From Selaginella moellendorffii (taxonomy: Eukaryota > Plantae > Lycopodiophyta): a DNA stretch of 64,000 nucleotides. The translations under genes were made by a program, and so were the position numbers. Positions 26,497-59,609 of this stretch are shown here, in pieces (position 1 is the first letter of the stretch; each line of letters starts with the position of its first letter). The stretch spans positions 496,130 to 560,129 of the forward strand of contig NW_003314279.1 of NCBI RefSeq assembly GCF_000143415.4. The letters are read 5' to 3'. The notes beneath the pieces were generated by a model. That model saw only the letters and a list, made by a program, of their open reading frames with translations, made no database searches and was not told the DNA's origin.

Positions 26497-27519
26497 ATGC
26501 AGCGCTTTGGAAAAGTATACAGGATAGTTATAACGTTTTCGAGTCGTGGCGCCTTCACGGGGCCGAAGTTAGTCATTCAGCATAATAGGATAGCTACAGG
26601 GGAGGATTGTGGAGAGGTAACTGGAAAGGAGCGCTCCTTGTCGCAAGAGGAGTGCACCGCTATCAGGAGAAGTGACAGGCCAGTGGTGGCGGAGAACTTT
26701 AAGCGGAAGCCTGCCGAGTGTATGCTGGTGGAACAAGTGTACAAGAAAAAGGAGCTCTTGAGACCGTCGGGCATCACTTTCGAAACGTGTGAGAAGCCGA
26801 AGCGGACCAGGTTGCTGGAGCCGGCTGGACAGAAACTGCTGAATGACTTGGGCCTGGACTTGTTCTACTTCACGCCGGTCCCCAAGAGTGATCCCGACCT
26901 ATGTCAGGCCTTCATTTCTACGTATGCTCATCCTTTTCGATACGGGATGGTTGACGGGAAAGCAGTGCGGATCAACTACGAGGAAATCGCAAAGCTGACA
27001 GGTCTTCCAATTGGGAACTGGAAGTATAAGAAGTACGACCTTCGAGGCAAGCACCAGGCGATCCTGTATGGAATCCTGCGGACTTTCAAGCAGAAGAAGC
27101 CCGGCCTATTTTCTCTGGAGCATGTGAAGTTCGGGGACGGGCTTGAGGACAGCATAGCCTTCAGAGAAGTTGCCAGCCTACTTATGGAGAGGCTCATATG
27201 CAAGCCGCATCCTTCGGACAGCGTAATGCCGCAACTCATTCTGTCCATGCATGGATCTCTCCGGCGCAACCAGATCATGAAGTGGGCTCAGCTGTTGACA
27301 GTTCGGCTTTGCAAGTCGGTATTCTATACCCGACTAACAGGATCATTTCCGTTTTGCTACGCCGAGTGGCTGACGGGTCTCATTCGCCAGCAGATCGAAG
27401 GTGACGAAACCAGAGACCTTGAGTTGGAAACAAGCTTGAAGGCTCTGGCTAAGATGGAGATAGACAGGGCGGTTTTGGACTCTAGGATTCAATCTCTGGA
27501 GGCTCAGAAGCAGCAGTGA
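26497..27519 (+). CDS. 340-aa ORF, paralog of the 21823 transposon-ORF-like domain
   Basis: LLNDLGL..PVPKSDPDLCQAF..VDGKAVRI..KLTGLPIG..LMERLIC..MKWA..WLTGLIRQQIE aligns colinearly with the 676-aa protein; start uncertain. Confidence 0.75.
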   Translation: MQRFGKVYRIVITFSSRGAFTGPKLVIQHNRIATGEDCGEVTGKERSLSQEECTAIRRSDRPVVAENFKRKPAECMLVEQVYKKKELLRPSGITFETCEKPKRTRLLEPAGQKLLNDLGLDLFYFTPVPKSDPDLCQAFISTYAHPFRYGMVDGKAVRINYEEIAKLTGLPIGNWKYKKYDLRGKHQAILYGILRTFKQKKPGLFSLEHVKFGDGLEDSIAFREVASLLMERLICKPHPSDSVMPQLILSMHGSLRRNQIMKWAQLLTVRLCKSVFYTRLTGSFPFCYAEWLTGLIRQQIEGDETRDLELETSLKALAKMEIDRAVLDSRIQSLEAQKQQ

Positions 27520-29327: not shown

Positions 29328-32300
29328 GCTGTCCAGCGTACATGTTGTAGAGCGTGACATACGTCGCGGAATCGGCAGAGTCGAGCTCCAGGAGCTCCTT
29401 GGCAACTCTGGCACCCCGAGCAACGTCGTTGTGGATCTTGCACGACATGAGCAGGTTCTTCCACACTGCTTCGTTGGGCTTGAACGGCATCTTTCTGATC
29501 ACGGCTTCGGCCTCCTCCAGCCAGCCGATTCTTCCCAGCAGGCCGACGATGCACGAGTAGCGCTCCCGCTTGGCCGTCACCCGGTACTCCGTTCCGAGCT
29601 GGAACAAGTAGTAGAAGGCTTCCTCGAGCAGGCCAACGTGCTGGCAGACGGAGGCGACGCTCATGAGCGCTACGTTGTCGGGCTTAAGTCCTTCCTGCTG
29701 CAGTCCACGAAACAGCTTGCGTGCCTCGGCAACCTCACCGTGCTGCGCCGCCACCGTGACTATCGAGTTCCAGGAAACGAGCGCCCGCTCGCGCATGGAG
29801 TCGAAGACTCTCCGTGCCTCTCTCGGGCTCCCGCACTTGCCATACATGTTGATGAGCGTGTTGTCGATGATCACGTCCGAGAGGAAACCGGACTCAGCTA
29901 TGCTCCTATGGATGATCCTGGCTTGGACGAGCCCGGCATGGCCAGCACAGGCGTCAAGGATGGCATTTACAGTTCCCCGGTTGAAGCTGACGCCTTCGAG
30001 GTCCATTCTCCTGAACAAAGCGATGGCCTTTCCCCCTCGGCCGTGTTTGGAATAGGCCGAGATCATGGAGTTGTAGAGCAGCACGTCCTTGGGCGCGGCT
30101 GTTTCGAAGGCTTCCGCTGCCTCCTCCAGAGAGAAGCACTCCGAGTACATCCCGATGAGAGCGGGCGAGACCGTGGTGCTCGAGTCGTATCCCGAGCCTT
30201 TCACTTGCTCGTGGATCATCCTCCCGCGGCTTAAAGACTTCAAGCTGCTGCACGCATCGAGAATTCCCGCAAAGGTGACGGTGTCGGGCTTGTCTCCATA
30301 CTGCTGCATCCAGTGCCACAGCTCGAAGGCCTCGTAGTGGCTGCCGTCTTCGACACAGGAGCACAGCATGGAAGTCCAGGAGACAACGTCCCGGTAGTCC
30401 TGGATGCTCTGGAAGACGACCTTGGCATCCTCCAGACTCTGGCACTTTCGGTACGCGTTGATGAGGCAGTTCGCCACCGCGACGTCCCGGAGCAGTCCTG
30501 CCGAACAGATCTGAGCGTGGAGCATCCGGACCTGACTTATGTCGGTGAAACACGCATCGAGGCTCGCGAAGAACGTCACTCTATCCGGCTTGGTGCCTTC
30601 GAGCTGCATCGAGGCGAGCAACTCCAACGCGGCGTCACCCTGAGCGTTCTGGACGTATGCCGACGCAAGAGCGTTCCAGGAGACGAGATTCTTCTCCTCC
30701 ATCCTGTCGAAGGCGGCCTTCGCTTGCTCGAGTCTCGAGCACCTCCCGTACATAGTGATCAAAGTGTTCCCGACAGAGACGGACTCCTCGACTCCACACT
30801 CGGCCGCACACTCGTGAGCTCGGACTCCCTGTTCCAAGTCCCCCAGGCTCGCGCAGCTATCGATGACGCTCACAAAAGTCTGCTCGCCTGCCTTGACGCC
30901 TTCCTGGTTCATCCGGTGGAACATCTCCACTGCCGCTTCGTCCGCCCCGCACTGAGCGTAAGCAGTCAGGAGCGTGTTCCAGGCGAAGAGATCCTTGTCC
31001 CGGACGCCATCAAACGTTCTCTTTGCGTCGGAGATGCTTGAGTTCCTGGCAAAAACTTGGAGCAGCGCCGTCTGGAGGAGCACGTCCGACCGAAGCCCCG
31101 CGGAGGTGACGAGCTCCTGGAGCAGCCTCACCTGGCGTAGGCTGGTGCAGACCTCGAGCACGGTGAGAAAGGTGACTTTGTCGGGCCGGACGCCTTCGTG
31201 CTGCATGGTCCGGAAGAGCTTGAAGGCCTCGCGCTCCAGCCCGTTGTGAGCGTAGGCGTCGACGATCGAGTTCCAGGACGAGACGCTCTGCAAGGCCATG
31301 GCATCGAAGAGCTGCTTGGCGTCGCGGACGCTGCCGCACTTGCCGTGCATGTGGACGAGCGAGTTCCCGACGAAGACGTTGGAGCTGTGGAAGCCATTCT
31401 CGGCGGCTCTGTCGTGGATCATCCTCAGCTCGCTGGCCTCCTCGGCGGCACCGAGAACACTCACGAAAGTCACCTCGTTTGGAGCCACGGAGCACTCGTG
31501 CTGCATCCTCCGGAACATCTCCAGCGCGCTCTTGCGGTGGCCGTGCTGCGAGTAGGCCCGGATGATGGCGTTCCAGGACACAACGTCGCGCTGCTCCATC
31601 CTCTCGAAGACGCGCCGGGCCTCCTCCACAGCGCTGCAGTCGCCATACATGCTCACCAGCGTGTTCGCGATGACCACATCCGACTCGAGCTCGTCCGCGA
31701 CGATCATGGCGTGGATCTCTCGGCCGTGCTCCAGGCTCTCCTCCACGCAGCAGCAGCCGAGCAAGCTCAAGTAAGTCACCCTGTCCGGCTTCACTCGCTC
31801 GTGGATCATCCGCTGGAAGAGCTCCAGCGCCCGCTCGCCATTGCCAGCCCGGGCCAGCACCGTGATCATCGTGTTCCAGGACACTACATCCTTGTGGGCG
31901 ATGCTCTCGAACACCAGCTCGGCCTCGTCCAGGCGCCCGGCTCGTCCATACAGGTTGGCGAGAGCGTTGCCGAGAAAGGTGACGGACTGGAGGCCTGCGG
32001 CAAGAATTAGCTCGTGAATCGTCCTCACTGATCTTGCCGATGGCGAGGAAGAGCACGACTCCAAGGCTGTGAGGAATCCTACCTTGTCCGGCTTGGCTCC
32101 CTCGAGCAGCATCGCGTGGAAGAGCTCCAGCGCCGCGGTGGTATGCCCGTTGTGGGCATACGCGGCCATGATCATCGTCCAGGAGAAGACGTTGCGGTGG
32201 AGGATCCTGTCGAAGACGCTGCGCGCGTCCTCCACTCGGCCGAGCTTCCCATACGACTGGACAAGGAGGTTGAGCAGCAGGCGATCGGTGGCGAGAGTGG

Positions 32301-32520
32301 CCGAGGAGAGGATGTGGCGGTGGATGCGCTTCGTCTGCCAGACGTGGATGCATCGCCGGATGAGCGAGGAGATGTGTGGAGCCGAGGTGGATTCGCCGTC
32401 GTCGCCATCGCTTCGATCCAGCCGGTCCAGCTCCCGGTCGAGAGTGAGATCGGCGCTGGAAGAACCAACACCGGCAGTAGAGAAGAAGTTTCTCCTGGAT
32501 CTCGAGCAGCGCAAGAGCAT
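29260..32520 (-). CDS. PLS-E class PPR protein (1086 aa)
   Basis: P-L-S triplets (MYGKCG..A..VF..DVVSWN), YSCIVGLLGRIG, WKNLLMSCKIH, ATYVTLYNMY; no DYW. Confidence 0.95.
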   Translation of the reverse strand: MLLRCSRSRRNFFSTAGVGSSSADLTLDRELDRLDRSDGDDGESTSAPHISSLIRRCIHVWQTKRIHRHILSSATLATDRLLLNLLVQSYGKLGRVEDARSVFDRILHRNVFSWTMIMAAYAHNGHTTAALELFHAMLLEGAKPDKVGFLTALESCSSSPSARSVRTIHELILAAGLQSVTFLGNALANLYGRAGRLDEAELVFESIAHKDVVSWNTMITVLARAGNGERALELFQRMIHERVKPDRVTYLSLLGCCCVEESLEHGREIHAMIVADELESDVVIANTLVSMYGDCSAVEEARRVFERMEQRDVVSWNAIIRAYSQHGHRKSALEMFRRMQHECSVAPNEVTFVSVLGAAEEASELRMIHDRAAENGFHSSNVFVGNSLVHMHGKCGSVRDAKQLFDAMALQSVSSWNSIVDAYAHNGLEREAFKLFRTMQHEGVRPDKVTFLTVLEVCTSLRQVRLLQELVTSAGLRSDVLLQTALLQVFARNSSISDAKRTFDGVRDKDLFAWNTLLTAYAQCGADEAAVEMFHRMNQEGVKAGEQTFVSVIDSCASLGDLEQGVRAHECAAECGVEESVSVGNTLITMYGRCSRLEQAKAAFDRMEEKNLVSWNALASAYVQNAQGDAALELLASMQLEGTKPDRVTFFASLDACFTDISQVRMLHAQICSAGLLRDVAVANCLINAYRKCQSLEDAKVVFQSIQDYRDVVSWTSMLCSCVEDGSHYEAFELWHWMQQYGDKPDTVTFAGILDACSSLKSLSRGRMIHEQVKGSGYDSSTTVSPALIGMYSECFSLEEAAEAFETAAPKDVLLYNSMISAYSKHGRGGKAIALFRRMDLEGVSFNRGTVNAILDACAGHAGLVQARIIHRSIAESGFLSDVIIDNTLINMYGKCGSPREARRVFDSMRERALVSWNSIVTVAAQHGEVAEARKLFRGLQQEGLKPDNVALMSVASVCQHVGLLEEAFYYLFQLGTEYRVTAKRERYSCIVGLLGRIGWLEEAEAVIRKMPFKPNEAVWKNLLMSCKIHNDVARGARVAKELLELDSADSATYVTLYNMYAGQLKHSEEPQDFELDELEEARLDA

Positions 32521-32545
32521 GGCGGTGGTGGGAGAGATCTAGGTG

Positions 32546-34522
32546 ATGGGCGATCGCATTCTTCGATGCTTGAGCCGGACTTCCATTGCTATGGCGGATG
32601 CTGGCCGGAGATCGAGAGGACCAGCAGCCCAGCTTCCGAGAAGAGCCCTAGACGAGGATCCAGTTGATGGGCTTGATAGATTCGGGAAATCCAGTCGAGC
32701 TCGTCTCATGGGGATCGCGGAGGAGATGGAAAGATTGCCGCTCGAGGAAGCCATCCACGGGCTGGAGATGCTGGGTTTCAGTCCAGGAGTGGAGCTCTAC
32801 GCGGCATTGCTGCGACGATGCGGCAGCCAAGGATCCCTGGCGGAGGGAATTCGCGTCCACGAGCACATTGCAAGGAGCAAGCTTGTGCGAGTGAGGTTCT
32901 TGGAGAACACGCTCATGGAGATGTATGGGAGGTGTGGTGGCGTGCAAGAGGCTACCGCGGTCTTCGAGAGAATGGAAGATTGGAACGTCTACTCGTGGAC
33001 GATCATCATCGCAGCAAATACCCAGAACGGCCATCCACTCGAGGCACTGCAACTCTTCTACCGGATGAACCAGGAAGGGACTGCTCCAAACAACCACACT
33101 CTAAGCATCGCCATCGCAGCGTGCTCGGCACTGGTGGATCTCTCGCGAGGGAGGAAGATCCATGCGAGCTTGGAAGGCTGTGGCTTCCAGGCCGACGATC
33201 ACGTCAAGAACACGCTCATGGACTTCTACACCAAGTGCGACAGCCTTGACGACGTGAAGAAGGTGTTTCGATCGATGGGAGGCGACGCCAAGGTGGTCAG
33301 CTGGACGTGCCTCATCGTTGGCTGCGTCCAGCTCGGGAGCTACAGGGAGGCCTTCCACTTCTTCAAGCTCATGGAGCTCCAGGGGATCCACGCTGACACC
33401 GTCACTTACGCCTCGCTGCTCGACGCCTGCTCCAACTTGGCGTCGCTCTCGCAGGGCCGGAAGCTCCACGCTCGCATCGCCGAGCTCGGGCTGCTCGAGG
33501 CCGACGTGGTGCTCCAGACTTCCATCCTCACCATGTACTCGAAGTGCGGAAGGCTGGGAGAAGCTCGCGGGATCTTCGACAGGATTGGCGAGAAGAACAT
33601 CGTGGCGTGGTCGGCGATCATCATCGCCTACGCGCAAAACGGCGACTGCTCCACCGCGTTGAAGCTCTTCTGGAAGATGGAGCAGGCGGGGCAGAAGGCG
33701 AGCGAGACGACGTTCGTGAGCGTCTTGTACGCTTGCAGCCATGCCGGCCTCGTCGACGATGCGTACTACTACTTCACCACCATGATGAGCGAGAGGAAGC
33801 TGGAGCCTTTGCCGGGACACTATGGTTGCATCGTGGATCTGCTGGGCCGAGCCGGGCGACTGGCCGATGCCGAGGAGCTCATACAGCGGATGAAGGCTCC
33901 ACATTCGGGGGTGCTCTGGACGACGCTTTTAGGAGCTTGCAAGACGCATGGAGATATGATGCTGGCGGAGCGAGCAGCGGAGAGGATCCGCGAGCTGGAT
34001 CCAGGCTCTGCGACACCGTACGTACTGCTTTCGAATGTCTACTCGGAAGCTGGACGATGGGACCTGGCAGCCAGCGTGAGGAAGCGCATGGACAACATGA
34101 AAGTGAAGAAACCAGCGGGGAAGAGCTGGGTGGAAGTGAGAGGCAAGCTGCACGAGTTTGTAGCGGGGGACCAGTCCCATCCGAAGATCGGGGAGATTGT
34201 TTTGGAGCTCAAGAGGCTGCTCGCGCTGATCAAGGAAGCCGGATACGCTGCGGACAAAAGTGCCACACTCCACAATGCGGAAGAGGAGGAGAAGGAAGGA
34301 CTCCTTTACTATCACAGTGAGAAGCTCGCGATCGTCATGGGGCTGCTTCACAGCCCCCGCGGAGAGCCCGTCCAAGTCGTGAAGAACTTGAGAGTTTGCT
34401 CCGACTGCCATGCTGCCGCCAAGTTCATCAGCAAGGTGGTGGACAGGCAGATTGTCCTGAGGGACACGAAGCAGTTCCACCACTTTGAGCACGGGCGCTG
34501 CTCGTGTGGAGACTACTGGTGA
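32546..34522 (+). CDS. PLS-DYW PPR protein (C-to-U RNA editing factor)
   Basis: PG-box KKPAGKSWVEV, HSEKLA, KNLRVCSDCH, ends CSCGDYW. Confidence 0.96.
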   Translation: MGDRILRCLSRTSIAMADAGRRSRGPAAQLPRRALDEDPVDGLDRFGKSSRARLMGIAEEMERLPLEEAIHGLEMLGFSPGVELYAALLRRCGSQGSLAEGIRVHEHIARSKLVRVRFLENTLMEMYGRCGGVQEATAVFERMEDWNVYSWTIIIAANTQNGHPLEALQLFYRMNQEGTAPNNHTLSIAIAACSALVDLSRGRKIHASLEGCGFQADDHVKNTLMDFYTKCDSLDDVKKVFRSMGGDAKVVSWTCLIVGCVQLGSYREAFHFFKLMELQGIHADTVTYASLLDACSNLASLSQGRKLHARIAELGLLEADVVLQTSILTMYSKCGRLGEARGIFDRIGEKNIVAWSAIIIAYAQNGDCSTALKLFWKMEQAGQKASETTFVSVLYACSHAGLVDDAYYYFTTMMSERKLEPLPGHYGCIVDLLGRAGRLADAEELIQRMKAPHSGVLWTTLLGACKTHGDMMLAERAAERIRELDPGSATPYVLLSNVYSEAGRWDLAASVRKRMDNMKVKKPAGKSWVEVRGKLHEFVAGDQSHPKIGEIVLELKRLLALIKEAGYAADKSATLHNAEEEEKEGLLYYHSEKLAIVMGLLHSPRGEPVQVVKNLRVCSDCHAAAKFISKVVDRQIVLRDTKQFHHFEHGRCSCGDYW

Positions 34523-34538
34523 TCGCAAACGAGCTCTT

Positions 34539-36458
34539 CTACCAATAGTCTCGGCAAGAACAATTTCCATCTTCCATGTGATGGAACAAGTTGATGTCGC
34601 GGATGACGATCTTCCTCTCGGTCACCTTGGATATCACCTTCGCGGCGGTGTGGCAGTCGGGACACACGCGGATATTCTTGACGATGCTGATGGTCGTCTT
34701 TGGAGGAGTTTTGATCAGCCCCAGCCCGATGGCCAGCTTCTCGCTATGGAAGTAGAGGATGTCCTCCTTCTCCTCCTCCTCGGCGTCATGCAGTACTTGC
34801 TTGGTATCGGGTACGTAGCCGTGTTCTTTCATGACTTTGCTCACTCTCTGAATCTCCTGGCAGATTTGGACGAGGTCCGGGTGCCAGGAATCGCCCACGA
34901 TGAACTCACTCGTCTTGCCGTTGATCTCGATCCAGCTCCTGCCGCCGGGCTTCTTTATTCCTCGGTCACGCATCAACTTCTGGACTTTGGCGGCCATGTC
35001 CCACTTCCCAGCGTCCGAGTAGATGTTGGAGAGGAGGCTGTAAGGCCCGGCGCGGTGCGGAGCCAGCCGGAAGACGTGCTCCGCGGCTCGAGCTCCAATC
35101 TCCACGTTGCGGTGGATCCGGCAGGCCTGCAGCAGCGACATCCACGACACCGAGTCGGGAGGGATCGGCATCCGGTTGAGGAACTTCTCGGCGTCGGCCA
35201 GCCAGCCAGCACGCGCGAGAAGATCGACCGCGCAGCCAAAGTGCTCGGCAACCAGCGGGATCCCCCGGTCGGGCTCGAGCGTGGTGAAGTAGTGCCAGGC
35301 CTGGTCGACGAAGCCGCCGTGGCTGCAAGCGTAGAGGACGTGCGTGAAGGTGACGCTGTCGGGCTTGTAGCCATCCTGCTCCATGCTCCAGAAGAGCTTC
35401 AAGGCGTCGCCGAAGTGGCCGTTTCGAGCGTAGGCCGCCACCATGCTGGAGAAGGTGATGTTGTTCGGCTCCAGCGTCTGGTCGAAGAGCTCGCGGGCCT
35501 CGTCAACTCGACCACACTTCGCATACATGTTGAGCAGCGCGGTATGCAGCACGACGTCGATGCAAACGCCCGAGGTGATGATCCGGTCGTGGAGGTGGCG
35601 GCCTTGGGCGATGGCGGACAGGTTCCCGCAAGCGTCCACCAGCGTCGCGAAGGTGAGGGCGCTGGTGATCCGGAAGCCGTCCTGGTCCATGACGCGCAGG
35701 AGCTCCAGCGCCGACGCCTCGCGGCCGCACTGGATCCTCCCGGCCAGCATCGTCGTCCACGACACCTCGTCGCGCGACGGCATCGCCCAGAAGGCGCGCT
35801 CGAAGTCGTCCATGCCGCCGCAGCGGCGGTACATGTTGAGCAGCGAGTTGGCCACCACGGGGTCGTGGAGCATGGCGGTGCTCGCGAGCGGCGCGGTGAT
35901 GGAGCGCCCGAGCTCCAAGTTGGCGGTGTCGGCCACCGCGCAGAAGATGGCGCTCACGACGTGGGCGTCGGGGTGGCAGCCGCGGAGCTGCATCGCGCGG
36001 TAGTGGCCGAGAGCCGCGCGGGGCCGCGCGTTGCGGAGGCAGGCCGAGATGAGCATCATCCAGGAGAAGACGTTGGGGTCGGGCTGGCGGGCGAAGACGG
36101 CGTGCGCGCTCTCCACGTCCCCGCACTGGCCATACGCCTGGACGAGCTTGTTGGAGAGGTAGCGGCTGCGCAGGGCGCCGGTGGCGAGCATGAGCGCGTG
36201 GAGCTGGTGGGCTTGTGGGAGAGCTCGCTCGGCGGCGCAGCGGTGGAGGAGGAGCTCCACCGCCTCGCGGACGAGGCCCGGGGGGTGTGGCTGCCGCTGG
36301 AGCGCCGCCAGGACGTCCTTGACTGGGAGGCGCTCCACGTCGTGCCTGGTGAGCAGCATCTGGGTCGACGATTCTGGGCTCTCTTGAGCTGCCAGCGCCG
36401 ATGCTCGGCGAATCCATGACCGCCCACGACGAGAACTCGTGCTCCTCCTCCACCACAT
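34539..36458 (-). CDS. PLS-DYW PPR protein (C-to-U RNA editing factor)
   Basis: KKPGGRSWIEI, HSEKLA, KNIRVCPDCH, ends CSCRDYW. Confidence 0.96.
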   Translation of the reverse strand: MWWRRSTSSRRGRSWIRRASALAAQESPESSTQMLLTRHDVERLPVKDVLAALQRQPHPPGLVREAVELLLHRCAAERALPQAHQLHALMLATGALRSRYLSNKLVQAYGQCGDVESAHAVFARQPDPNVFSWMMLISACLRNARPRAALGHYRAMQLRGCHPDAHVVSAIFCAVADTANLELGRSITAPLASTAMLHDPVVANSLLNMYRRCGGMDDFERAFWAMPSRDEVSWTTMLAGRIQCGREASALELLRVMDQDGFRITSALTFATLVDACGNLSAIAQGRHLHDRIITSGVCIDVVLHTALLNMYAKCGRVDEARELFDQTLEPNNITFSSMVAAYARNGHFGDALKLFWSMEQDGYKPDSVTFTHVLYACSHGGFVDQAWHYFTTLEPDRGIPLVAEHFGCAVDLLARAGWLADAEKFLNRMPIPPDSVSWMSLLQACRIHRNVEIGARAAEHVFRLAPHRAGPYSLLSNIYSDAGKWDMAAKVQKLMRDRGIKKPGGRSWIEINGKTSEFIVGDSWHPDLVQICQEIQRVSKVMKEHGYVPDTKQVLHDAEEEEKEDILYFHSEKLAIGLGLIKTPPKTTISIVKNIRVCPDCHTAAKVISKVTERKIVIRDINLFHHMEDGNCSCRDYW

Positions 36459-37369: not shown

Positions 37370-38121
37370 GGCGAAATCTTAGAAGATCTAAGTCAGATTG
37401 GTTTGCTTGGGGGTTAAGCACATGCTAATCAATAAGTACTTGCAAAGGAATCTGCGTAGCTTGAATCTGTCACAAACTTGTCACCGTATAGCCTAGTATG
37501 AAAGACTTGCAAATCACAAACAAAATACTTGCATTATGTTTTTTCTTTTTTGGAAAAATGCTAGTGCCATTCACTTATGTTGGAGACTAAGTAGTCTTAT
37601 TCCTCCAGCTAATAATAATAATAAAACATAGTTTTATTGTGTCGTACTGGAAGCATGAGACCACAAGCGAGGATTTGTAATTACCTTCCTACTCCTCACA
37701 ACTGGACCCAAAAGACACTGAAAACATGTCAAAACACCAGCTAAGGTGATGAGCTATTCCTTTTGTCCTCTTTTTTGGTAATATCATCTTTTGAAATACT
37801 CAGCTTAGCTTTGACCAACTGTAAACCTTCAAAGATAACAGATAACTTTGATATCGAGTATCTCCGACAAGCCATGCTTTGCCAAAATGAAAAATAAAAC
37901 CTGTCGCGATATTGTGAAGCACTTTGGTGTTTTAGAAACAATGAGACTGTTGCCCTCCAGAACTATCGAACGACGCTCTGCAACCATATGCCAAGATAGA
38001 TAAGTTATAAACATGACGAAATCAAGGACGAACCCTTCCGCCACAACCGCTTCCAGGAGGAATATAAACACAAGAAGTGTATATAAACACAAGTTTACCC
38101 AGCCATTTGTGCAGAAGCGCA

Positions 38122-40973
38122 ATGGGTCTCACGAAGAGCAGCCTCTGGTACACAATCGTAGCTTCCATTTTTGTTCTTACAGCGGCCGCTCCACACAAGA
38201 AAGTGAGTATAGAACTGAATGTTGGTTGTCGCCAAAGGTCATTTTCCACTCATCATCCCTGCACAGGCATACATCGTTTACATGGGTGAGAAATCGCACA
38301 AAGACCATAATGTCGTGCACGCACAAGTTCATTCCTTCCTGGCGGATACACTCGGAAGGTAAACAATTAGATGCTTTCTAAACATGCATACCCATACCTT
38401 TGGTTGAATTGTTGATACAGCCTTGAGGAAGCGCGGAGGAATATGATACACACCTACAAGCGCAGCTTCACTGGGTTTTCGGCCATGCTCACCGACGACC
38501 AAGCTGCACAGATAAAAAGTACGAGTTAATAAGGACAATATGTATATGCTTACCTTTGGTCGCAGGGAGAGAAGAGGTTGTTTCGATTTTCCCAAGCAAG
38601 AGTCACAAGCTCCACACAACCCATTCCTGGGACTTTTTGAATACCATCGACTCTTTCCCGGCTCAGAACAGCGATCCCAGTGGTTGTGAGGCTTCTGGCC
38701 AAGACATTATTGTTGGCGTCTTTGACTCTGGTACATAACGAGTTTATGAAGATGCACATACCAAACCATCAAGTTTTGCAGGTATCTGGCCGGAGTCCAA
38801 GAGCTTCAACGACGTAAGCATGCCACCGATACCAAGAAAATGGAAGGGAGCTTGCCAGGATGGAGAACAGTTCACTGCACGTAATTGCAACAAGTAAGAA
38901 GTCAAACTCCGAAACTATTGTTTTCAGACGATCTCACATGGATGCCAAAATGCCAGCAAGTTGATTGGAGCACGCTTTTACACAAACGGATACGATGCCA
39001 GCGACCCTGAGCTGCAAAAAACCTTCATCAAATCTGCACGGGATACGGACGGACACGGGACACATACCGCGTCAACTGCAGCGGGAAGGATTGTCAACGG
39101 CATAAGCTTCCCGGGAGGCCTTGGAGCTGGAGCTGCTAGGGGAGGAAGTCCAAACTCGAGAGTTGCCGCGTACAAAGTTTGCTGGGACGACTGCAAGGAC
39201 CCTGACATTCTAGCGGGCTTTGATGATGCCATAGCCGACGGCGTCGACATTATATCTGCGTCCATCGGCCCGGATCCTCCTCAGGCCAACTATTTCGAGG
39301 ATGCTATATCCATCGGAGCGTTCCATGCCCTGCAGAAAAACATCCTCGTGTCATGCTCTGCCGGAAACAGTGGAGACCCTTTCACGGCTACCAACCTTTC
39401 GCCATGGATACTGACGGTTGCAGCGAGCTCCATAGACAGGAGGTTTGAAGCCGATGTGGTCCTTGGAAACGGAAAAATACTTCAGGTAAGCTGTTGACAG
39501 TATCTGCAACGAGTTGAGCTTGACTTTGGAAACAGGGACTAGCTGTTAATCCATACGATTCTCAGTTCTTCCCGGTGGTTCTGGGAAAGGATCTTGCTGC
39601 CGCAGGAGTGACGCCTGCAAATGCAAGGTAATACAAGTCATCGAGGAAACTCAATGGTACCTAGTTGCTTTGTTGCGCAGTTTTTGCCATGCGGACTCCC
39701 TGGACGACGTGAAAACCAAGGGGAAAATAGTCGTTTGCCAGCATGAAATCCCGATCGAGTCGAGGGGAGCCAAGGCCGCCGAAGTGAGTCGAGCTGGTGG
39801 TGCTGGAATGATCGACATCAATCCTGAAGTTAAAGACCTGGCACAACCTTTCGTGGTCCCTGCATCACTGACCGACGAGGCCCAAGCGTCCATTCTCCGT
39901 GCATATCTAAATTCCACCAGGTGAGCAGCCAAAAGTATCTATCTACAGCCCCGTCTCTAACACCCCCTGGGAAAACCAACCAGCTCTCCCATGGCCAAGT
40001 TCCTCAAGACAAACGTCGTCCTCCACGACAAGCCGTCCCCAAAAGTGGCATTCTTCTCTTCGCGAGGTCCCAACACTGTTACTCCGGACATCATCAAGGT
40101 GAGTGGCAAAAGTTTCCTTGAGAGCTCGAGCACTCACATCCTGCTCTCCAGCCTGATATAACAGCACCAGGCCTCACAATCCTCGCAGCGTGGCCCCCTA
40201 TAGCAACCGCAGGAGCCGGCAACCGAAGTGTCGACTACAACTTCCTCTCGGGAACGTCCATGGCATGCCCGCATATCACTGGGGTGGCAGCTTTGCTCAA
40301 GGCCAGATTCCCATACTGGACAGCAGCTATGATCAAGTCGGCGATGATGACCACTGGTAAAGAACTTGTTCTTCCTTCTCACGGCTGTCCAAGTTCCTGA
40401 CCCAAATTCTTCGTTGGTTTCCTTCCAGCCACCCTCTCGGATAACACGAACAGCTTGATCAAGAACACTTTCACCAACACCCCTGCCACTCCTTTCGATT
40501 TTGGATCCGGGCATGTCAACCCAGTCGCGGCCCAGGATCCCGGACTCGTGTATGACATAAGCTTGGAGGAGTATACCAGCTTTGCCTGTGGCCTCGGCCC
40601 ATCCCCAGGAGCACTGAAGAACCTCACGATCACTGCCTGTCCACCCAATCCCATCGCTTCCTACAATCTAAACTATCCTTCCATCGGAGTAGCCGACCTG
40701 CGAGGCAGCCTCTCGGTCACCAGATCGCTAACCAACGTCGGGCCAGCGCAATCCCACTACAGGGCCAAGGTCTACTCACCTCCTGGCGTGATCGTGTCGG
40801 TGTACCCCTCGGAGCTCCAATTCACGCGGCCGCTCCAGAAGATCTCCTTCACCGTGAGCTTGAGCGTCCAGCAGCGATCCCAGGATTTCGTGTTTGGCGC
40901 CCTCGTCTGGAGCGACGGCAAGCATTTTGTGAGAAGCCCGATCGCCGTGAATGCTACAGCGATTGCGAGCTAG
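38122..40973 (+). CDS. Subtilisin-like serine protease (S8A subtilase), multi-exon
   Basis: Signal peptide, YIVYMG/I9 domain, [45 protein letters not shown]. Confidence 0.95.
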
Positions 40974-41680: not shown

Positions 41681-43572
41681 ATGAGCTGTAATCAGAAGAC
41701 CTCAACCATCCTGAAAGCGGCAACAGTGTATCTGGGTGGGCAGGGCAAGAAGAGCTTGGGCAGCCGGGCCTCGGCGATCTTCGCTGGGGAGGTCCCCGAC
41801 GACGACAGGGCCGATTCCTTTCTCGCCGAAAGGTCCTTCCTTCCGGTGGGTCGCGCCGCCGGGCTTTTCCCGTCGGAGCTAGCGGAGATAACTGACAGGA
41901 AGCCGCCGGTGGTGAAGAGGAGCGATCCTCCGGCTTTGGAGCAGCAGCAGCATGGGAAAAAGCAGCAGCCGGAGAGCAAGGACGATGTTCCGGTGGAGAT
42001 TTTAGGACTTCCAGAGGCCGAGGGGGTGAGGACCGATCGGGACGAGCAGGCTAGCGAGTGCTCGAGCTCGTTTGGATTCAGCGACGCCACTTCCGGGGAC
42101 GAGGCAAACACCAACAACGCCAGTGAAGTAGACTCCGCTGCGAGGGATGGCAATGGAGCGCTGGAGACTGACAGGTACGGAAGCCATAGACACTTCTTAT
42201 CTCTCTTTGTTTTTTTTTTTTCCTTTTCTTACCACTCTTCCTTGAACGCACTCAAACGAAACGTATGACAAACGTTTTTATATCAGGAGGAGGCCCCTGA
42301 ATATGGACTGGAAAAACTATAGACGTGGTATTGAGTGGAGATGTCGGTGGCTTGATATTCGTCTTATGGAGTTGCAGAGGCAGGCTACAAAGTATGACGA
42401 GGTTCTCTCGGGGATCCAGAAGGCCAAGCCATGGGACGGGAGGACGGAGCCCGACGGTGCAGCGAGAGCAGCGCCTGTGCGGGAAGAGCGGCCCGCGCAG
42501 CCGCTCCTCCATCGCCAAAGGCGCAGGAAGGTGGAGGAGACTGTGGATGTGGCCGACTACATGTCAAAGCATCCTTTATTTCAAAGATACGGTAAAGAAG
42601 TGAATTTTATTCGATTTTCTCTTACGTCTCATAATGTCGACCTTGCAGAGAAGAAGAAGCGAGAGTATGAGGGGGAACAACACAAGGAGCCAAACGATTG
42701 TACGCGTATGATCATGTTGTCGATCTCTTGACCGGTTATGGCTAATTCTCTGCAACCATATGTTTGTAGTGGCGGCAGAAGGCGCAATGGTGAGGCTAGA
42801 TCCGCCGCCTGCCGATGAAGCAAACGAAGACTCGGTAGAAAACATCATGCTCAAGGTGGAGACGTTGCAAGCACGGGTGGTCCGGCTGAGAAACCAGCTC
42901 CGGGGCTCGATGTCGCACAAACTGCCTGGCCAGGTAGCCAGAGCAGGCGGAGGTGGCGGCGGCGCAGCGCGAGCTCCAGCGGCCAAGGCGGCTGCCGTCA
43001 GCCGTCTGACGAAGGCTGCTCCGAGCGGCCATCCTGTATCGCCAGCCGCGGTGAAAGGCGGGCAGGCTGCCCGAAGGCGGGCCTCGGACTACGATATCAA
43101 CAACGTGGTGATGCCTGTCAGCGTGGGTGCCAAGTACGTGCAACATGTGAGACATGCCAACATCGAGACACCTCAGTGGCGGCTGGCCGAGAAGTCCGAA
43201 ATGTGTGAAGAAGATAACTCGGATGACGAGGTTGGTTGGTTTGCTCTCTTTTTCTTTTTCTGTTTTCCTAGTTTCTTTTCCTTTTACTCGGACGAGATCT
43301 CACACGGATGAATGTATTTCAGGATACCGATGATGAAACTTACAAGAGCCGTCACGCGCCTTTGGAAGCGCAGGAGAGGCTTCATCGCTACGGGCCACGG
43401 ACTAACAAAAGGCCCCCGGAAGGGGAGAAGTTGAGCGCCAGAGGTAGCGGGTAAGGTTTTCTCTTTTCTTGTTTCTCGGCTTGCTCAGTCCAGAAGCTGA
43501 TGAAGTCTCTTCCTTTGCAGCTCGCACCAGATGCCTCAGTGTAGCTTGTCAGCACAATTTAGCGAAGGGTGA
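41681..43572 (+). CDS. KANSL1/NSL1-like chromatin scaffold with C-terminal PEHE-like domain, multi-exon
   Basis: WRCRWLDIRLMELQRQ coiled coil, GAARAAP (WIN-like), RRRASDYDINNVVMPVSV..IETPQWR, EDTDDETYKSRHAPLEAQER. Confidence 0.7.

Positions 43573-43611: not shown

Positions 43612-43642
<31 letters not shown>
43612..43642. repeat. (AGC)n trinucleotide repeat
   Basis: agcagcagcagcagcagcagcagcagcagc. Confidence 0.9.
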
Positions 43643-49500: not shown

Positions 49501-51508
49501 CTTTGTACAAAGGGATTAGGAACAACTAATACCATCTACAAATCTGCTAATGCCTCCTTTTGATGTTCCACCAGATCCCGGCCCATCTATGAGAGAACCC
49601 TGATGGTCTTCTATTATTCTGAGAGGAGGGGATGATGTGAGGTCCAAGTATACAACTACGATGTTGTATGCTAATATTAGCATAGTGGGATTTTTGTAGC
49701 TGTTAGATTGGTTTTAATCTGGACCACTCACTCATGTATATGTTAGGGTTTTTGGGCTAATTGATATACATATTTTTTGTATTCCCTTTCCATATTCCAT
49801 GCATTCACATAAGTATATTAAATATTAAAAAGACATAATAATTAATACATATTCCCATGTCTTAACCACTCACATGAGTGTTGCTTATGACTTGTCACCA
49901 TGGATGGCCACTCCCTATGCAGTGAGTAAGTTAGTTGATCCACATTTGCTGTTTTGAGTAGAATATGATGATCTTGGACCCAAGCTATTAATTAATCTGC
50001 TCTAGCTTTCGTCCTCCCTAAAAGTCAAGGTTTTATTAACAATGTTTTGCTTTTTTATTTAGGATTGTGATTTTGTTTTTGTTCCATTTGTTCTACATTT
50101 CTATCTAGAGCTATTGTTATACATAAATCTGCTCCCTTCTTTTGCCATGTTATATTATTATTAATTGAGGTTTGAGGCTGTAGATGCTCTATTATTCTCA
50201 TCTTGCAACATTATTTATGCTATTATGTTACATGTGGATTGGAGATTTTGCTACTCCAATTCTTGGTGTGCTATTGGCTCTAGTTTATATGGGATGTGAT
50301 TACATGGTTGCTCCTACTCTTGGTGTCTTACGATTTGTTATTAATGTAGAATGTCATAATGATATGAATTAACAAATAATTTCTAGAGGATGTTTGAGGA
50401 TCAAGCTTATGAGAAGATGATGTTTACAAGTTTGATTATATTCTTGATAAATAAAGTATTCAAATGCTTTGAGGATAACTTTAAAGAAAAATTAAAAATT
50501 TCATAGGGTAGTCCATAAATCTACTATTTAGTCTTTACTTTCTGCTTCCTATTCTTTCTAAATCTTTTTACTTCTCTCAACTTAAGCTGTCTTCTTGTAT
50601 TTTTAGTATTCATCTTTCATCTACAGTCAATTTTTCTTCCAATTTTCTTGGCATATTGTTCCTTATGAATTTTTTTAACCTAATATCCTCCTATTTCTGA
50701 GAACCTAATTCTTAGTTCTTTTGTGGATTTTTTGTTTTCTTAAAGTCTTTATTCCATTTTTCCAAGGGTTAAATCACTTTTGCTAGAGTTTTAAAGTTGA
50801 ATACATTTTCCTTATTATAGTTATAATATACTATAGTGGCTCTTGAAATCTTTTAATTTCATTCACAATTGTAATTTTGCTGTTAGTTCAAATATTTAAT
50901 AGTTTCACATAAAGTTGCAATTTGTTCATTAGGATATCATAGTTGAATACTTGTATCATAGCTTTAGGTTCTATTTAGTTCATAGTTATCAATAACTATA
51001 TCAATGATTCTATGGAGTTTGAAGTTCTTGTGCCCATATAAAACTCTAATGTTCTATTAGTCACCACTTTTTCATAGATGATGGTATAATGTATTTGCAT
51101 ATATAACACTACAAGGTAAATATATTATTTATATTAACATAATATATAGAGCATCTGATTAGAATTACCCATTTATGTATACAAGCAATAGAGGCCTTAG
51201 CCCAATTAATTTATTTTTCAAGAAATAGTATTAAAGATATGATTTATTAGGCATTTTTATTTACATATATTATTAAGTATAGTGTAAATAATTTAGCCAA
51301 AGTATACTTATAAATAAAAATAAAAATTATACTAAATTTCAAAGATTAGAGATATGCTATTTTGTCCTACTGAATCTCAATACTAAAGACTTAATTTGAG
51401 GCTGAAACATCTATTGCACACCTCTAAACTACTATCCCAATTAAGTATAAAAACATGAAAGCATTCTTCCTTGATTCATCACTTTTTACTTGCTTCATCA
51501 CTTATAGC

Positions 51509-54500
51509 TGTAAGATATAAAACTGTGGAAATGGAGCCATATGGCAATGCCCAAGGTGGAAATCTAACGAATGTAACATATTTGGACTAAAAGCTCTAAC
51601 TTAGAAAGTCAAAAGTGAGAGTGGAACTTTTAAGGAAGTGCTTGAGAAATGAGTATGGAGCCATCAATAAATGAGTCTCTAGAAAGAGACAAAAGAATGA
51701 CTAACATACATTAGTGTCTTGACATGTGGAAGTGTTAAGATTGAGTTTGAGACCAAGTCTAAGACTAAGTCTGAAATCGAATCCGAAATCAAATCCAAGA
51801 GTGGGTGGCACTATCTACTTGGATACTTTACATGGCTTATTAGAACTTTGCTTTAGCCACATGGCTAGGGCATCTTGGTGGTGGAAAGTGGGGAGAGTAC
51901 CCATAAAGCTTATGTTGCATTGTAATATTTCGAAATGTCATTTCAAAGTCTCTAACTGTGGAAGGAAAGATGAGTGGCCCTTTTACTTATTAATCAAATA
52001 TATAATCATGTTGTGAGGAAGTCCCAAAGGTTAATAAGACTTAATGGATGGACTTTTAGGCCTTGATTCAATGGCAATATTGGCAAGCACTACTCTGGAC
52101 AAAAAAGAACTTCACAGAATTAAAGAGGATAATATTCCCCTATGTTTTAGGGCATCTTAAGGATGTTAAAAAGTGGTTATATAACAACTACGCATGAATG
52201 GAAGGTTTAATCTTCAAAAGACAAGACTATGGTATAAATTTTTTTCATTCTACTTTAGCCACTTAACCACACCTCTAACCACTTGGAGGAGTCTCATTCA
52301 CAACCTCCATAATGTAAACAACCAAAGAGAACAACTTAAGAGATGATCCATGAGGTTCAAATATAAAGGGAAAAGGCCCATGAACAAAAGTGCATCTTCT
52401 TTTCTAATTGGTTAAGGGTTTTGGGATATTTGGGGTTAAGCGTCCTTGGGTTTGAATAGTACTGGGTTAAGTGACCTCCCGGGAAGTCTAAATTTAGTCA
52501 CTTACATTTGGTATTAGAGGGGTCTCAGGTCCAACTCTATTGATTGGCTAGGGGAATCACACCATATGTTAATTGACATCTAGCAGGTCCAATTTGCTCC
52601 CGCCGGCTCAATTTGCTCCCGCCAGGCTCGACCCGAGCGGTAGCGTATGCACTTGCAGGAAAGTGTGGTAAATTGTAAACAACCAAAGAGAATGACTTAA
52701 GAGATGATCTATGGGTTAAATATAGAGGGAAAGGGCCCATGAACAAAAGTGCACCCCCATTTCCAATCGGTTATGGGTCTTAGAATATTTAGGGTTAAGC
52801 ATCCTTGGGTTTAAATAGTACTAGGTTGAGTGACTTCCCAGGAAGTCTAAATTCAAGAGCTCACACATAAGTCCATTTCAGGACTTGGGGCTTGCTAGCC
52901 CTGAAAATGGCATCTATGCCACTTAACCTTTGCACTTGGTCTAAGTGCTTCACATATCCGATCCCATGACCAACACTTAAGGGTACCACTAACATATCAA
53001 CCCATTACACTAAAGCCATGCCTATTCACCATTGTCACACTAGTGATTTAACACCACTTACATCACAGTCCCATCTCTCAAAGACTGGGCCATCTGTCTA
53101 GGAGTGGTCATCCCATATCCACTCCTTAGCATCCTTAGGATGCCCACAGACATGGGGAATAACCTTCCCCAATATCCCTTTTTCAGTCCCCACCAAGTCC
53201 TTTCCTGTGTCCATGTTCACCAACATTGCCACTAGATCAAAGCCCACCAAGCTCGACCACTAAGTCTTCTTATTCTCTGGGACTTCCTCACCATGTGACC
53301 GTATCTTTGGTCATTACACTATAGGATTGCTCCTCTTCCTTTCCATAGTCTAAGACTTTGGGACAACATTTTGGAACACCGTGGCTCTACACGAGCCTCA
53401 TAGGTACTCTCCCCACCTTCCACCTTTGGGTGCTCTAACCATGGGGCTAGAGCGAGGTTCCATTAAGCCACATTAAGTATCCAAGTAGGTAGTGCCACCC
53501 ATGCTTAGACTGGGAGCATCAACTATTTGATCTTTGCACTTGGTCCAAGTGTTCCACGTGTCCGATCCCATAATCAACACCCCAAGGTACCACCAACATA
53601 TCAACCCATTACGCTAGGCCATGCCCATTCACCTTGGTCACATCGGTGGTCCAACACCACCTGCATTGCAATCCCGTCTCTCCAAGACTGGGCCATCTGT
53701 TCATGAGTGGTGATCCCAGATCCACTCCTTAGCATCCTTAGAATGCCTATAGACATGGGGAATAGCCTTCTCCAATATTTCCTTCCCGGTCCTCACCAAG
53801 TCCCTTTCTGTTCATGGCCGTGCTCACCAGCATTGCCACTGGATCAAGGCCTATAGGCCCGACCACTAAGTCCTACGGTCCTTTGAGACTTCCTCACCGT
53901 GTGACTATGTCCTTGGTCATCACACTAAAGGGCTACTCTTCTTCCTTTCCATAGTCTAGGACTTTGGGACAACATTTTGGAACACCATGGCCCTACGCAA
54001 GCCTCATGGGTACTCTCCCCACCTTTTGCCTTTGGGTGCTTTAGCCATGGGCTTAAAGCAAGGTTCCGTTGAGCCACACCTGGTATCCAAGTAGGTAGTG
54101 CCACCCACACTTGGACTGGGAGCATTGACCATTCGATCTCCCGGGGGAACTAGAGCCGGCTCTTGAACACTTCACCAAGCTACCTCGCTTGTCGGTCCGT
54201 ATTCACTCTAGTCTTGGACTTCCCTATGGTCAACTCATCACCCAACACTGGGTATGGCCTTTCTAGGCCAAACTAGCTTCACTAGGCCACACTCTCCCTA
54301 CTATACTTTTGGAACCCCCCACAGCTCCCCCCCCCCGGGGGGACGATTGCTTTGGGCTTTCACCCAACTGCCTGTATTAATATTCAGACTCGAACTCGGA
54401 CTCGGACTCGGTCTCGGTCCCGGTCTCAGACTTAGACTTATACTCGAACTCGGTCTCAGTCTCGGTCCCGGTTCCATCTCGGACTCCATCTCGGGTCCAT

Positions 54501-55170: not shown

Positions 55171-58100
55171 TGTAATGTAGGACTCATTTTTATGAATATT
55201 GTCCACTTTTTCACATTGTTCCTAATGAAGTATATGAATTGGCAACATTCATAAACAATTATTTCTTATATATAAAGGAGTTTCTATCACCTTTTTTTCT
55301 TTATTTTTGAAAAATGAGCCACCATAAATATTGAGGAACAAACTTGTTTAAATATGGAGAGCACAAAGTAAAGCACTTTCTAATATCAAACTTAAAGTGG
55401 TTAATAATCCTTTAGTTCTTTCTTCTTCTCCTTTTTATATAACAAGCTCAATGTAGGTGGGTTGAAGAGTATTGGATTGATGGTTTTTATTTCCATTTGG
55501 TTGGCTCTATACTCTATACACACAATGGCTTCACAAAATTTACTGGAAGCTTTGACAAGTAATCTTTCCACAAATTCATTCAAACCATTAAATGTTGTAT
55601 CCTTAGGTATTACAACCAATATGTCAGTGTGGATAGACACATTTACTTGATCCTTGTGGATGAGCTTCTTCACAATCTTATACCTCATATCATCACTATT
55701 GTTGAAAATGCAAAACTCATGATTTATTTCCTCAAATAGCTGAAAGCTTGCTCAAACTCTCCAAGTCAGAAGGCAAAGCTCTAGTGTATGTGGAGAATCA
55801 CAGTTAGTTTTCTTTTCATTGGGGAAAAACTATTGCATAATCTCATGTTATAGTCCATATCTGGCGGGAAATCTCTCTTCCAAGCACTTATCATTGAGAA
55901 GAATGTGGAATACCTAGATGCTGGAAACTGTTTCCATGAAAGTATATATGTTTCATACTTTGGTTTTGATCTTTGTAGATGGCCAAGCTTCTCATTGCTT
56001 CTTTAGGCAGGTCACCATTCATGGGTAACGAGTTTGGCCATATAAAGATACTTTTCATTGTTCCTTAGTGGTCTTTAAGAAAAAGATTTTACACATGTGG
56101 AGAGCAAGCAATAACTTCTCATATGAGTTTACTTGTTAGAGATGATCCTTACTAGATGACAAATGGCACACAAAGTTTGACATTGTAAGTAGAGACAACA
56201 TCATTTCTCTCAAGACTCTTGTCTTATCAGCAATTGATGTAAGTGCCTATGGCAATTGAGCAGAAGTATTTAATTCTTAACGATGCACCAGCAACAAACT
56301 TGTAAGTTGATGATTCTGTTTCCTCCTCTTTTTTATGATTTTGGGTTTCTTAGGATCAATGTCTTTAGCACAAAATTGTTCCTCCACAATTGAGTGTAGG
56401 GGTTGTCGAGTGGAAGCTTTCATCTATCTCTCATGTAAGAATACTATAGGTTTATAGACTTGCAAAAGTCTGGGATGCCTCAGTTAGTGTGATGTAAAAA
56501 ATCTGGCAATTATGACAAAGCAATGACTTTTTGTTTTCTTAAATACTATGAACTCAATTTTGCATTAATGTCAAGTAAAAATTCATGCAACCTCAATTGA
56601 GGTTTATGAATTCAGTGAGTTCATGCATTGCATACCACCGTGTATTCATAACCAATCAAAAGCCTAGAAACTTATGTGGAAGCCACTTTTCATAGTATTT
56701 TAATATTTGTTAGATCAATATTTGTTATCTTTTCTTTATTAATAGTTCATTGATATATATAAAACCTAGACATGTTGCAATAGAAAATACTTCCTATGAT
56801 TTTAAAATTAAAATTCAGGATAGACATTTTGTTGTGTGGAATATAAACATATCTTATCTAAGGATAGGATTTCAACAAAATTTTTCTTCAACAATACAGG
56901 AAATTACAATATAGTAAAGGTTTTGTCACAGCTATTAGAGTTTTGTCATTTGCAAGAAATGCAAAGATCACGTGAGCAAGTTTTATATGAGAATGCACTA
57001 ATATATATAGTCCATTTGGTTGTTCCATCCAGAGGTGTTCTGGTAAACATAAGTATTGGTAGTGAATTTCTAATAACTTTTTGATCAATGTATTATTTCA
57101 AAAACTTTTATTCCAAATATTTTAGAATGAATTCATCCTCCTTTACTATGATCTTATTGTTTTTTATTTTTATTTTTATTTTTGTGCTTAGATTTAGCTT
57201 AAAAAAATTATATTAATCAATAAGAACTAAGACTTTATAACTAGAAGTCTCAAACTAAATAAACATATAATAATTTTAACAAAGATTGAAACTAAATCTC
57301 CTAGAGTTTTAAGTAACTTCTCTGTGTGTGTGTGTGTGTGTTTAAAGGCAAATATTTGTATTTATATATGACAGTGGTTTGATGCAATTTGTCCAGCCAG
57401 GACATACTGTGTAAAAGCTGTGTTGCAAGTGATTGTAACCTCTATTGTTATAGATTAGTGTTAAATCAGTATATCGACTAGATTGGAGTCTCACATGTAA
57501 TAAATCATTATCTAAATAAACATATCCTCCTTGACCAAAAGGAATTATACATTCATTCCATATAATACTAAATTCCTAAAACATCATATTTAAATTCACA
57601 AACATCTTCCTCATTATATATGGCATTAGTTCTAGAAATACAAGCTTTTAGAAATGGAGAGCTGGTTCCAGATATTTTATCATTTATTAAATGAACTATA
57701 ATTAAGAAAATCCTTTTTGCCATTCTTAAAATGTTATTATTAATATAAATGTTATATTTAACTTTGCTTAAATATAAGATAATCCTTGATAGAAGAAATT
57801 GATCATATAAAAAGTATATTCTTTTCTTTTAGACTATATAAGGAATTTTGATGATGTGGCAGCCAGACTGCAAGTATTATAAGAAAAAAAAATATTATTA
57901 AAATATTTTTCTTGCAACATGTGTCAATTTGTCTAAGTTTTATATTTATCAATAGACTGTAGCTTTTAAATTTTTAATAAATAATTATTAGAAAATAAAT
58001 CACACTTTTGCACAAAATAGACTGATCTTTAGTTGCAAATAAAGATTCAAATAATGGTAGAAATGTACCTCAATCGTAAAAGTCCTTGTAGCCCTAGGTA

Positions 58101-59560: not shown

Positions 59561-59609
59561 TCCAGGCTTATTTCTTCTGGGTCGAAGGGTTGTTTTTTAA
59601 GGTTTAGCC

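Follow-up and report, generated by a model that had tools for sequence, protein, structure and literature searches.

A probable streptophyte homologue of the animal NSL scaffold KANSL1/NSL1 encoded in the Selaginella moellendorffii genome

KANSL1 (NSL1 in Drosophila) is the subunit that defines the animal non-specific lethal (NSL) histone acetyltransferase (HAT) complex, and it has been described as an unstructured scaffold that uses short binding motifs (PMC4018492). One of these, the WDR5-binding WIN motif, lies in human KANSL1 within a peptide of residues 585–598 with R592 as the key residue (PMC4018492). The PEHE domain of MSL1, a second scaffold, binds both KAT8 and MSL3, and the paper that states this says no more about the halves of the domain. 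A 2019 review of the NSL complex gives Arabidopsis homologues for KANSL2, KANSL3, MCRS1, WDR5, and HAM1 and lists only KANSL1 (entered as '-') and PHF20 as absent. Here we describe LOC9640435, a gene in a 64,000-nucleotide stretch of Selaginella moellendorffii DNA (contig NW_003314279.1, positions 496,130 to 560,129; this whole stretch is the window, and all nucleotide positions below refer to it). An earlier note, made from the letters of the window, had proposed that the region 41681–43572 encodes a plant KANSL1/NSL1-like protein with colinear motifs and had described the NSL complex as generally treated as metazoan, which in light of the review is only partly right. We consider it highly probable that the product of LOC9640435 is a largely disordered streptophyte homologue of KANSL1/NSL1, the NSL HAT complex's scaffold, and we infer a KANSL1-like tethering role for it.

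The database protein of this gene (XP_024532741.1, isoform X1, 498 amino acids, alias SELMODRAFT_412517, here P0001) is annotated as an 'uncharacterized protein'. It was retrieved by searching 1.84 billion representative proteins with the large exon (42772–43230), across which it is 100% identical. All full-length analyses were based on P0001, and exons were searched singly, not joined.

Sequence comparison establishes homology to animal KANSL1/NSL1 at the C-terminus, where a DINN box is fused to the first half of a PEHE domain made up of a TPxWR motif, an acidic run, and a DDExYxxRHxxxExxER helix. P0001 matched the Pfam PEHE family (PF15275) with an E-value of 5e-8 and 33.9 bits against a curated cutoff of 34; an earlier expectation that a missing profile match to PEHE or KANSL1 would speak against the proposal is thus answered by a match. 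The alignment covers profile positions 1–72 of 127 (residues 417–487; 43162–43536, spliced across introns 43231–43322 and 43451–43520), and the protein ends 11 residues later. PF15275.12 was already assigned to P0001 in the precomputed domain table of the protein collection, and among the UniProt names one Physcomitrium paralogue is a 'PEHE domain-containing protein' and others are 'Bromo domain-containing protein'; the bare domain assignment is not new. Matches to PEHE at E <= 0.01, in the same place as in P0001, were found for 12 of 15 plant members, and every plant member with a listed PEHE score lies below 34 bits. The domain reportedly (Marin 2003) takes its name from conserved Pro, Glu, His, and Glu positions; across the 15 plant members P420 and E439 are invariant and H450 and E457 nearly invariant.

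The link to KANSL1 itself came from several comparisons. Composition-adjusted BLASTP of P0001 against KANSL1 of the bird Apteryx (P0216) gave an E-value of 5e-12 over 117 residues. When a profile of 12 plant members was compared by hhalign with a profile of 14 animal KANSL1/NSL1 proteins, the two aligned over 80 columns with 98.4% probability and an E-value of 8.8e-15. This alignment begins with the RRR-DYDINN box, a block upstream of the Pfam domain that the aligned KANSL1 proteins also have. The box, RRR-DYDINN-VMPVSV...IETPQWR at 43072–43182 (RRRASDYDINNVVMPVSV...IETPQWR in the earlier note, found where it had been read), is the strongest block that the plant protein has in common with animal KANSL1 (RRRR...ILTPSWR). 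Exon 4 alone retrieved by phmmer an animal-type KANSL1-like fragment (P0033, a JGI entry) with an E-value of 7.5e-4 among 1.84 billion proteins, and the plant profile retrieved a mite-like KANSL1 orthologue (P0084) with an E-value of 5.7e-12 among 5.8 billion proteins. This protein in turn retrieved approximately 1,600 proteins, and the named ones among the 120 listed are mostly KAT8 regulatory NSL complex subunit 1 or non-specific lethal 1. A feature search of the ESM Atlas with a gymnosperm-like member provided leads only, namely clusters of streptophyte (0.93) and chordate PEHE (0.87) proteins, and the same search with exon 4 returned no usable match. A word-indexed search with the exon-4 open reading frame (ORF) returned nothing, within a length window of about 100–320 amino acids that excludes full-length relatives.

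Since the protein is rich in Ala, Arg, and Glu and mostly disordered, and exon-by-exon scans gave only weak matches (in Pfam, exon 5 matched PEHE with an E-value of 0.017 and 16 bits and the other exons had no match), the likeness to KANSL1 could in principle be a chance effect of low-complexity, charged, disordered sequence. The probability of this is practically negligible: the Pfam, composition-adjusted BLASTP, and hhalign statistics rule out such a chance resemblance, and named KANSL1 proteins were retrieved reciprocally.

An MSL1-type PEHE protein acting as scaffold of an MSL-like complex was also considered, since MSL1 fragments in complex with MOF are the only solved structures that the plant profile matched. 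In a search of Protein Data Bank (PDB) sequences the top matches were the MSL1 chains of MOF complexes (4dnc_D and 2y0m_B), with E-values of only 0.1–0.2 and an alignment spanning the whole MOF-binding peptide; the PEHE match of P0001 takes in the portion through which MSL1 binds the HAT domain of MOF. Single-exon phmmer searches of PDB sequences found nothing relevant. Bird KANSL1 matched no PDB chain at E <= 1e-3, and therefore no template of a KANSL1–MOF complex exists; the lack of any KANSL1 chain of at least 20 residues in the PDB explains why only MSL1 was matched there. The plant protein, moreover, matches only positions 1–72 of the 127 in the PEHE profile, as animal KANSL1 does (1–64 and 1–68), and leaves the second half unmatched. 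Kadlec is reported to have described that half in 2011 as the MSL3 (MRG)-binding part. Together with a DINN box, a WIN motif, and an HPxxS motif that align to KANSL1, this makes an MSL1-type identity extremely unlikely.

Having established the C-terminal homology, we turned to the rest of the chain. To avoid circularity, the N-terminal helix and the DINN/PEHE region were removed from both families and the remainder was compared profile to profile with hhalign. The best match was a WIN motif together with a basic patch (P 0.0026; plant 'e.sa--ARts.l' versus animal 'd.sC.aaRtRPv.s.RKRkLvR'). In Selaginella this is DGAARAAPV at 42453–42479, with Arg225 as the central residue, the motif that the earlier note had recognized as an A-A-R motif; the basic patch follows at 42507–42536 (LHRQRRRKVE, corresponding to KKRRLVR in animals) and is conserved in plants. 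The next match was colinear with the first and aligned plant 'srHPlFS' with animal 'fHpVLS' (P 0.051). This motif, absent from the earlier note, is MSKHPLFQRY at 42561–42590 in Selaginella; its H and P are invariant in plants, and its counterpart in animal KANSL1 is HP(V)LS, which is likewise invariant. The WIN tripeptide, [AS]-R-[TAF], is kept in 14 of the 15 plant members, in lineages that range from a zygnematophyte alga to what is probably a gymnosperm, and stands out as an island from the unconserved, disordered linker around it. Compared with human KANSL1 585–598, DGAARAAPV matches at the central Arg, Ala −1, Pro +3, and Val +4. At −1, moss and clubmoss members carry Ser instead, a residue that fly NSL1 also has there and tolerates (PMC4018492). 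The presence of a WIN motif in the plant family is thus supported at the level of sequence, and its resemblance to that of KANSL1, like the DINN/PEHE resemblance, is far beyond chance.

Upstream of the WIN motif lies a helix (WKNYRRGIEWRCRWLDIRLMELQRQATKY, 42309–42395, which contains WRCRWLDIRLMELQRQ of the earlier note) that is nearly invariant in plants and a likely counterpart of the KWA-type helix of animal KANSL1. The coiled-coil helix had been described as W-x-W-L; the helix is present, but its plant form is W-x-x-x-W-L (EWRCRWL), and W-x-W-L is the animal form. Plant and animal helices can be aligned without gaps in a single register, in which the W, R, I, R, W-L, L/V, D/E-L, and R positions match. 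Statistically the match is weak (P 0.017–0.052 by hhalign; the observed score was equalled or exceeded by 25 of 300 column shuffles, P about 0.08), and the correspondence is best called suggestive. An AlphaFold 2 (AF2) model computed with the family alignment shows P0001 as mostly disordered, with a mean predicted local distance difference test (pLDDT) score of 53 and three confident helices at conserved blocks, residues 171–211 (helix 1, pLDDT 90–96), 308–331, and 443–462 (within the PEHE match); the WIN motif lies in disordered linker. This picture of a disordered chain with helices at its conserved blocks agrees with the published description of KANSL1.

The plant protein keeps the animal order of blocks, in which an amphipathic helix (a suggestive counterpart of the animal one) is followed by the WIN motif and basic patch, an HP(L/V)(F/L)S motif, and the DINN box fused to the first PEHE half. 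The four motifs quoted in the earlier note are all present in the window translations, on the + strand and in the order given, and the animal motifs that it had cited are correct when compared with real KANSL1 sequences such as that of Apteryx. The acidic run closes exon 4 at 43230 and DTDDETYKSRHAPLEAQER begins the following exon at 43323, so that the quoted 'EDTDDE...' string spans a GT-AG intron (43231–43322). Overall, the proposal of a plant KANSL1/NSL1-like protein with colinear motifs was borne out by the PEHE, BLASTP, hhalign, and WIN statistics given above.

The family is found in non-flowering streptophytes, and the designation 'plant' holds to that extent. Named or recognizable members come from a zygnematophyte alga (Spirogloea), liverworts (Riccia, Calypogeia, and Marchantia, in which it bears the catalogue name MpBromo7), mosses (Physcomitrium, Ceratodon, and Sphagnum), lycophytes (Selaginella and Diphasiastrum), ferns (Adiantum and Ceratopteris), and gymnosperms (Ginkgo and Taxus). 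No named angiosperm protein was among the 34 representative and 18 profile matches; no profile search restricted to angiosperms was made, and absence from that group is not proven. Angiosperm genes annotated as KANSL2 and KANSL3 exist. Most full-length plant members carry an N-terminal bromodomain (P0074, P0006, P0004, and P0022 are among the fusions), which is possibly a built-in acetyl-lysine reader; Selaginella P0001 and another member, P0010, are without one. In two further members (P0013 and P0077) bromodomain, helix, WIN motif, DINN box, and PEHE segment are encoded in single ORFs on Logan contigs of approximately 2.9 kb, which look like assembled mRNAs and give indirect backing to the predicted Selaginella transcript. 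P0010 (493 amino acids) is encoded by one uninterrupted ORF (L001:6001–7482) on an 18-kb Logan contig, beside a pentatricopeptide-repeat (PPR) gene, and its gene appears intronless, versus five introns in Selaginella. Physcomitrium also has a short paralogue (P0007) consisting of the C-terminal half only.

Several observations weigh against identifying the protein as a KANSL1 homologue in the full sense. Its PEHE score falls 0.1 bit below the curated cutoff, the similarity of the helix is not significant against the column-shuffle null, and the Selaginella copy has lost the bromodomain carried by most of its relatives. A cluster of four invariant Cys residues (a putative zinc finger) between the WIN motif and HPVLS in the 14 animal sequences has no counterpart in any plant member. 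Finally, one broad phylogeny has a distinct KAT8 arising in Holozoa and a distinct KAT5 in Opisthokonta, atop a ubiquitous KAT5/8 family, which means that the cognate enzyme in plants would not be the animal one. An alternative is a PEHE protein that shares ancestry with KANSL1 only in its C-terminal box and serves a plant-specific chromatin complex, normally led by a bromodomain and unrelated to NSL, with the WIN, HPxxS, and helix likenesses due to chance or convergence. The DINN/PEHE region alone is overwhelmingly significant, the HPxxS match is at P 0.05, and the bromodomain fusion and missing Cys cluster amount to a different architecture; nor has a distinct KAT8 been reported outside Holozoa. 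Yet the WIN motif and basic patch came out on top of an unbiased linker comparison with a colinear match next to it, the WIN-like island is conserved in all but one of the plant members, and four blocks in one order in both kingdoms are unlikely to have arisen by chance. We therefore regard ancestry limited to the C-terminal box as rather unlikely.

Homology to the animal protein and colinearity with it are shown by the alignments, and a KANSL1-like function follows as a well-grounded inference. The protein would be a flexible tether. Through its PEHE segment it would grip a MYST acetyltransferase by the HAT domain, the plant enzyme being of the HAM (KAT5/8) type, and the WIN residue Arg225 would enter WDR5 at its central pore. 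Binding of both partners would then nucleate an NSL-like complex with the plant homologues of KANSL2, KANSL3, and MCRS1. Because a distinct KAT8 is placed in Holozoa, the plant partner would be a HAM-type enzyme and not animal KAT8. A broader and more tentative proposal, which we consider somewhat less probable than its opposite, is that the NSL-type scaffold is far older than animals: from streptophyte algae to gymnosperms a KANSL1-like protein, usually fused to a bromodomain, may join a single KAT5/8-type MYST enzyme (HAM), WDR5, and the KANSL2, KANSL3, and MCRS1 homologues, and may have been lost or have diverged beyond recognition in flowering plants. If true, this would explain why the scaffold was never seen in Arabidopsis, and it would mean that an ancestral MYST enzyme served both NuA4-type and NSL-type scaffolds before the split of KAT5 and KAT8.

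LOC9640435 is an intact gene of six exons, and the range of the earlier note is its exact coding sequence, from ATG to TGA on the + strand (41681–43572). P0001 maps to the window with zero mismatches. The gene is compact, with GC-rich exons and short, AT-richer GT-AG introns: GC is 0.57–0.62 in the four large exons and 0.36–0.42 in the three stretches between them, the middle one of which includes a 57-nucleotide mini-exon, and the splice sites are canonical. Exon 1 (41681–42174) carries the start codon and encodes a disordered N-terminus of low conservation (AF2 pLDDT <50), within which the conservation map of the 15 plant members marks two family-conserved blocks, ECSSSFG (42056–42076) and RDGNGA (42143–42160). 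Exon 2 (42287–42591, with a canonical AG acceptor and GT donor) encodes helix 1, the WIN-like motif, the basic patch, and the HPLFQRY motif. The mini-exon, exon 3 (42649–42705, EKKKREYEGEQHKEPNDCT), is present in P0001, and its YEKKK continuation is conserved in other plants. Exon 4 (42770–43230) contains helix 2 (42829–42900, the AF2 helix of residues 308–331), a linker rich in Gly and Ala, the DINN box, and the first part of the PEHE segment; exon 5 (43323–43450, DTDDETYKSRHAPLEAQERLHRY...) continues the PEHE segment, and exon 6 (43521–43572) adds a short tail that is not conserved and includes the TGA stop (43570–43572). Nine CAG repeats lie at about 43613–43641, approximately 40 bp past the stop and presumably in the 3' untranslated region. 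The upstream neighbour is a subtilisin-like protease gene (approximately 38000–40973, + strand), whose last exon (40455–40973) encodes an fn3_6 domain (E-value 1.9e-31).

The gene structure bears on the possibility that the Selaginella copy, having lost its bromodomain, is decaying or reduced in function and no longer performs the ancestral role. The gene encodes no bromodomain, and because only 700 bp separate the stop of the subtilase gene from the ATG of LOC9640435 there is no room for one upstream; the C-terminal IPKGKR block of relatives is also missing. On the other hand, the six exons form one unbroken reading frame with canonical splice sites, each of the conserved blocks is still there, and a bromodomain-less relative exists in P0010. 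A second haplotype copy, likewise intact, is identical at 495 of 498 residues (99%), a difference of only three positions. Decay of this copy is accordingly very unlikely, and a retained KANSL1/NSL1 homologue remains the preferred interpretation.

Elsewhere the window is gene-dense and GC-rich. A cluster of PPR genes occupies both strands at 27516–36458 and 60990–62660 and fits Selaginella, whose PPR-DYW family is very large. Two of these genes have complete E/DYW deaminase ends (32543–34522, + strand, and 34539–36458, − strand), and another (29260–32520, − strand) encodes 1086 amino acids. An F-box ORF of 339 amino acids lies at 59610–60629 (+ strand; domain E-value 3.5e-7). AT-rich stretches with a GC of 0.26–0.34 at 1–2000, 50000–52000, and 56000–60000 are probably repeats or transposon remains.

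The literature searched yielded no description of a plant KANSL1 or NSL complex. The defining subunit, listed in the 2019 review as absent from Arabidopsis, has a homologue in non-flowering green plants, and this places the origin of the NSL scaffold no later than the ancestor that plants and animals share. The KANSL1-like protein is a candidate organizer of promoter-linked H4 acetylation in plants; the Marchantia (MpBromo7) and Physcomitrium orthologues make this directly testable, and the bromodomain fusion and apparent loss in angiosperms pose concrete evolutionary questions.

Among known systems, BRPF1–3 and Epl1/EPC are long, flexible MYST scaffolds in which a short segment wraps the MYST domain, and BRPF carries a bromodomain in the same chain. 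Most plant members likewise join a bromodomain and a scaffold in one chain, but the MYST-binding segments of BRPF and Epl1 are of the EPcA type, not PEHE, and no sequence relationship to either was seen. Like the WIN motifs of MLL/SET1 methyltransferases and histone H3 (A-R-T/A/S), the plant motif has an A-R-A/T core with small residues around the central Arg and lies in a disordered linker; unlike those of MLL/SET1, it lies in a putative acetyltransferase scaffold and not in a SET-domain enzyme, and its WDR5 binding is predicted. With MSL1 (PDB 4DNC and 2Y0M) the plant protein shares a TPxWR-acidic-RHxxxE segment that aligns to the whole crystallized MOF-binding fragment, and it differs in leaving the second half of the PEHE profile unmatched; its KANSL1-type WIN motif, DINN box, and HPxxS motif may set it apart as well. 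The differences from animal KANSL1 are in size and accessories: the plant protein has 498 amino acids, under half of the approximately 1100 in animals, its helix is about 40 residues from the WIN motif instead of about 130, the helix signature is WxxxWL and not WxWL, the Cys cluster is missing, and the N-terminal bromodomain of the other plant relatives occurs in none of the animal KANSL1 proteins retrieved. The likely enzyme partner would also differ, a plant HAM (KAT5/8-type) MYST enzyme instead of a dedicated KAT8. In common with animal KANSL1 and Drosophila NSL1, it is a mostly disordered putative scaffold that matches only the first half of the PEHE profile, with the same succession of helix (a suggestive correspondence), WIN motif ([AS]-R-T-x-P) and basic patch, HP(V/L)(L/F)S, RRR-(F/Y)DINN-x-V/I-x-P, TPxWR, acidic run, and D(D/S)ExYxxRHxxxExxER helix.

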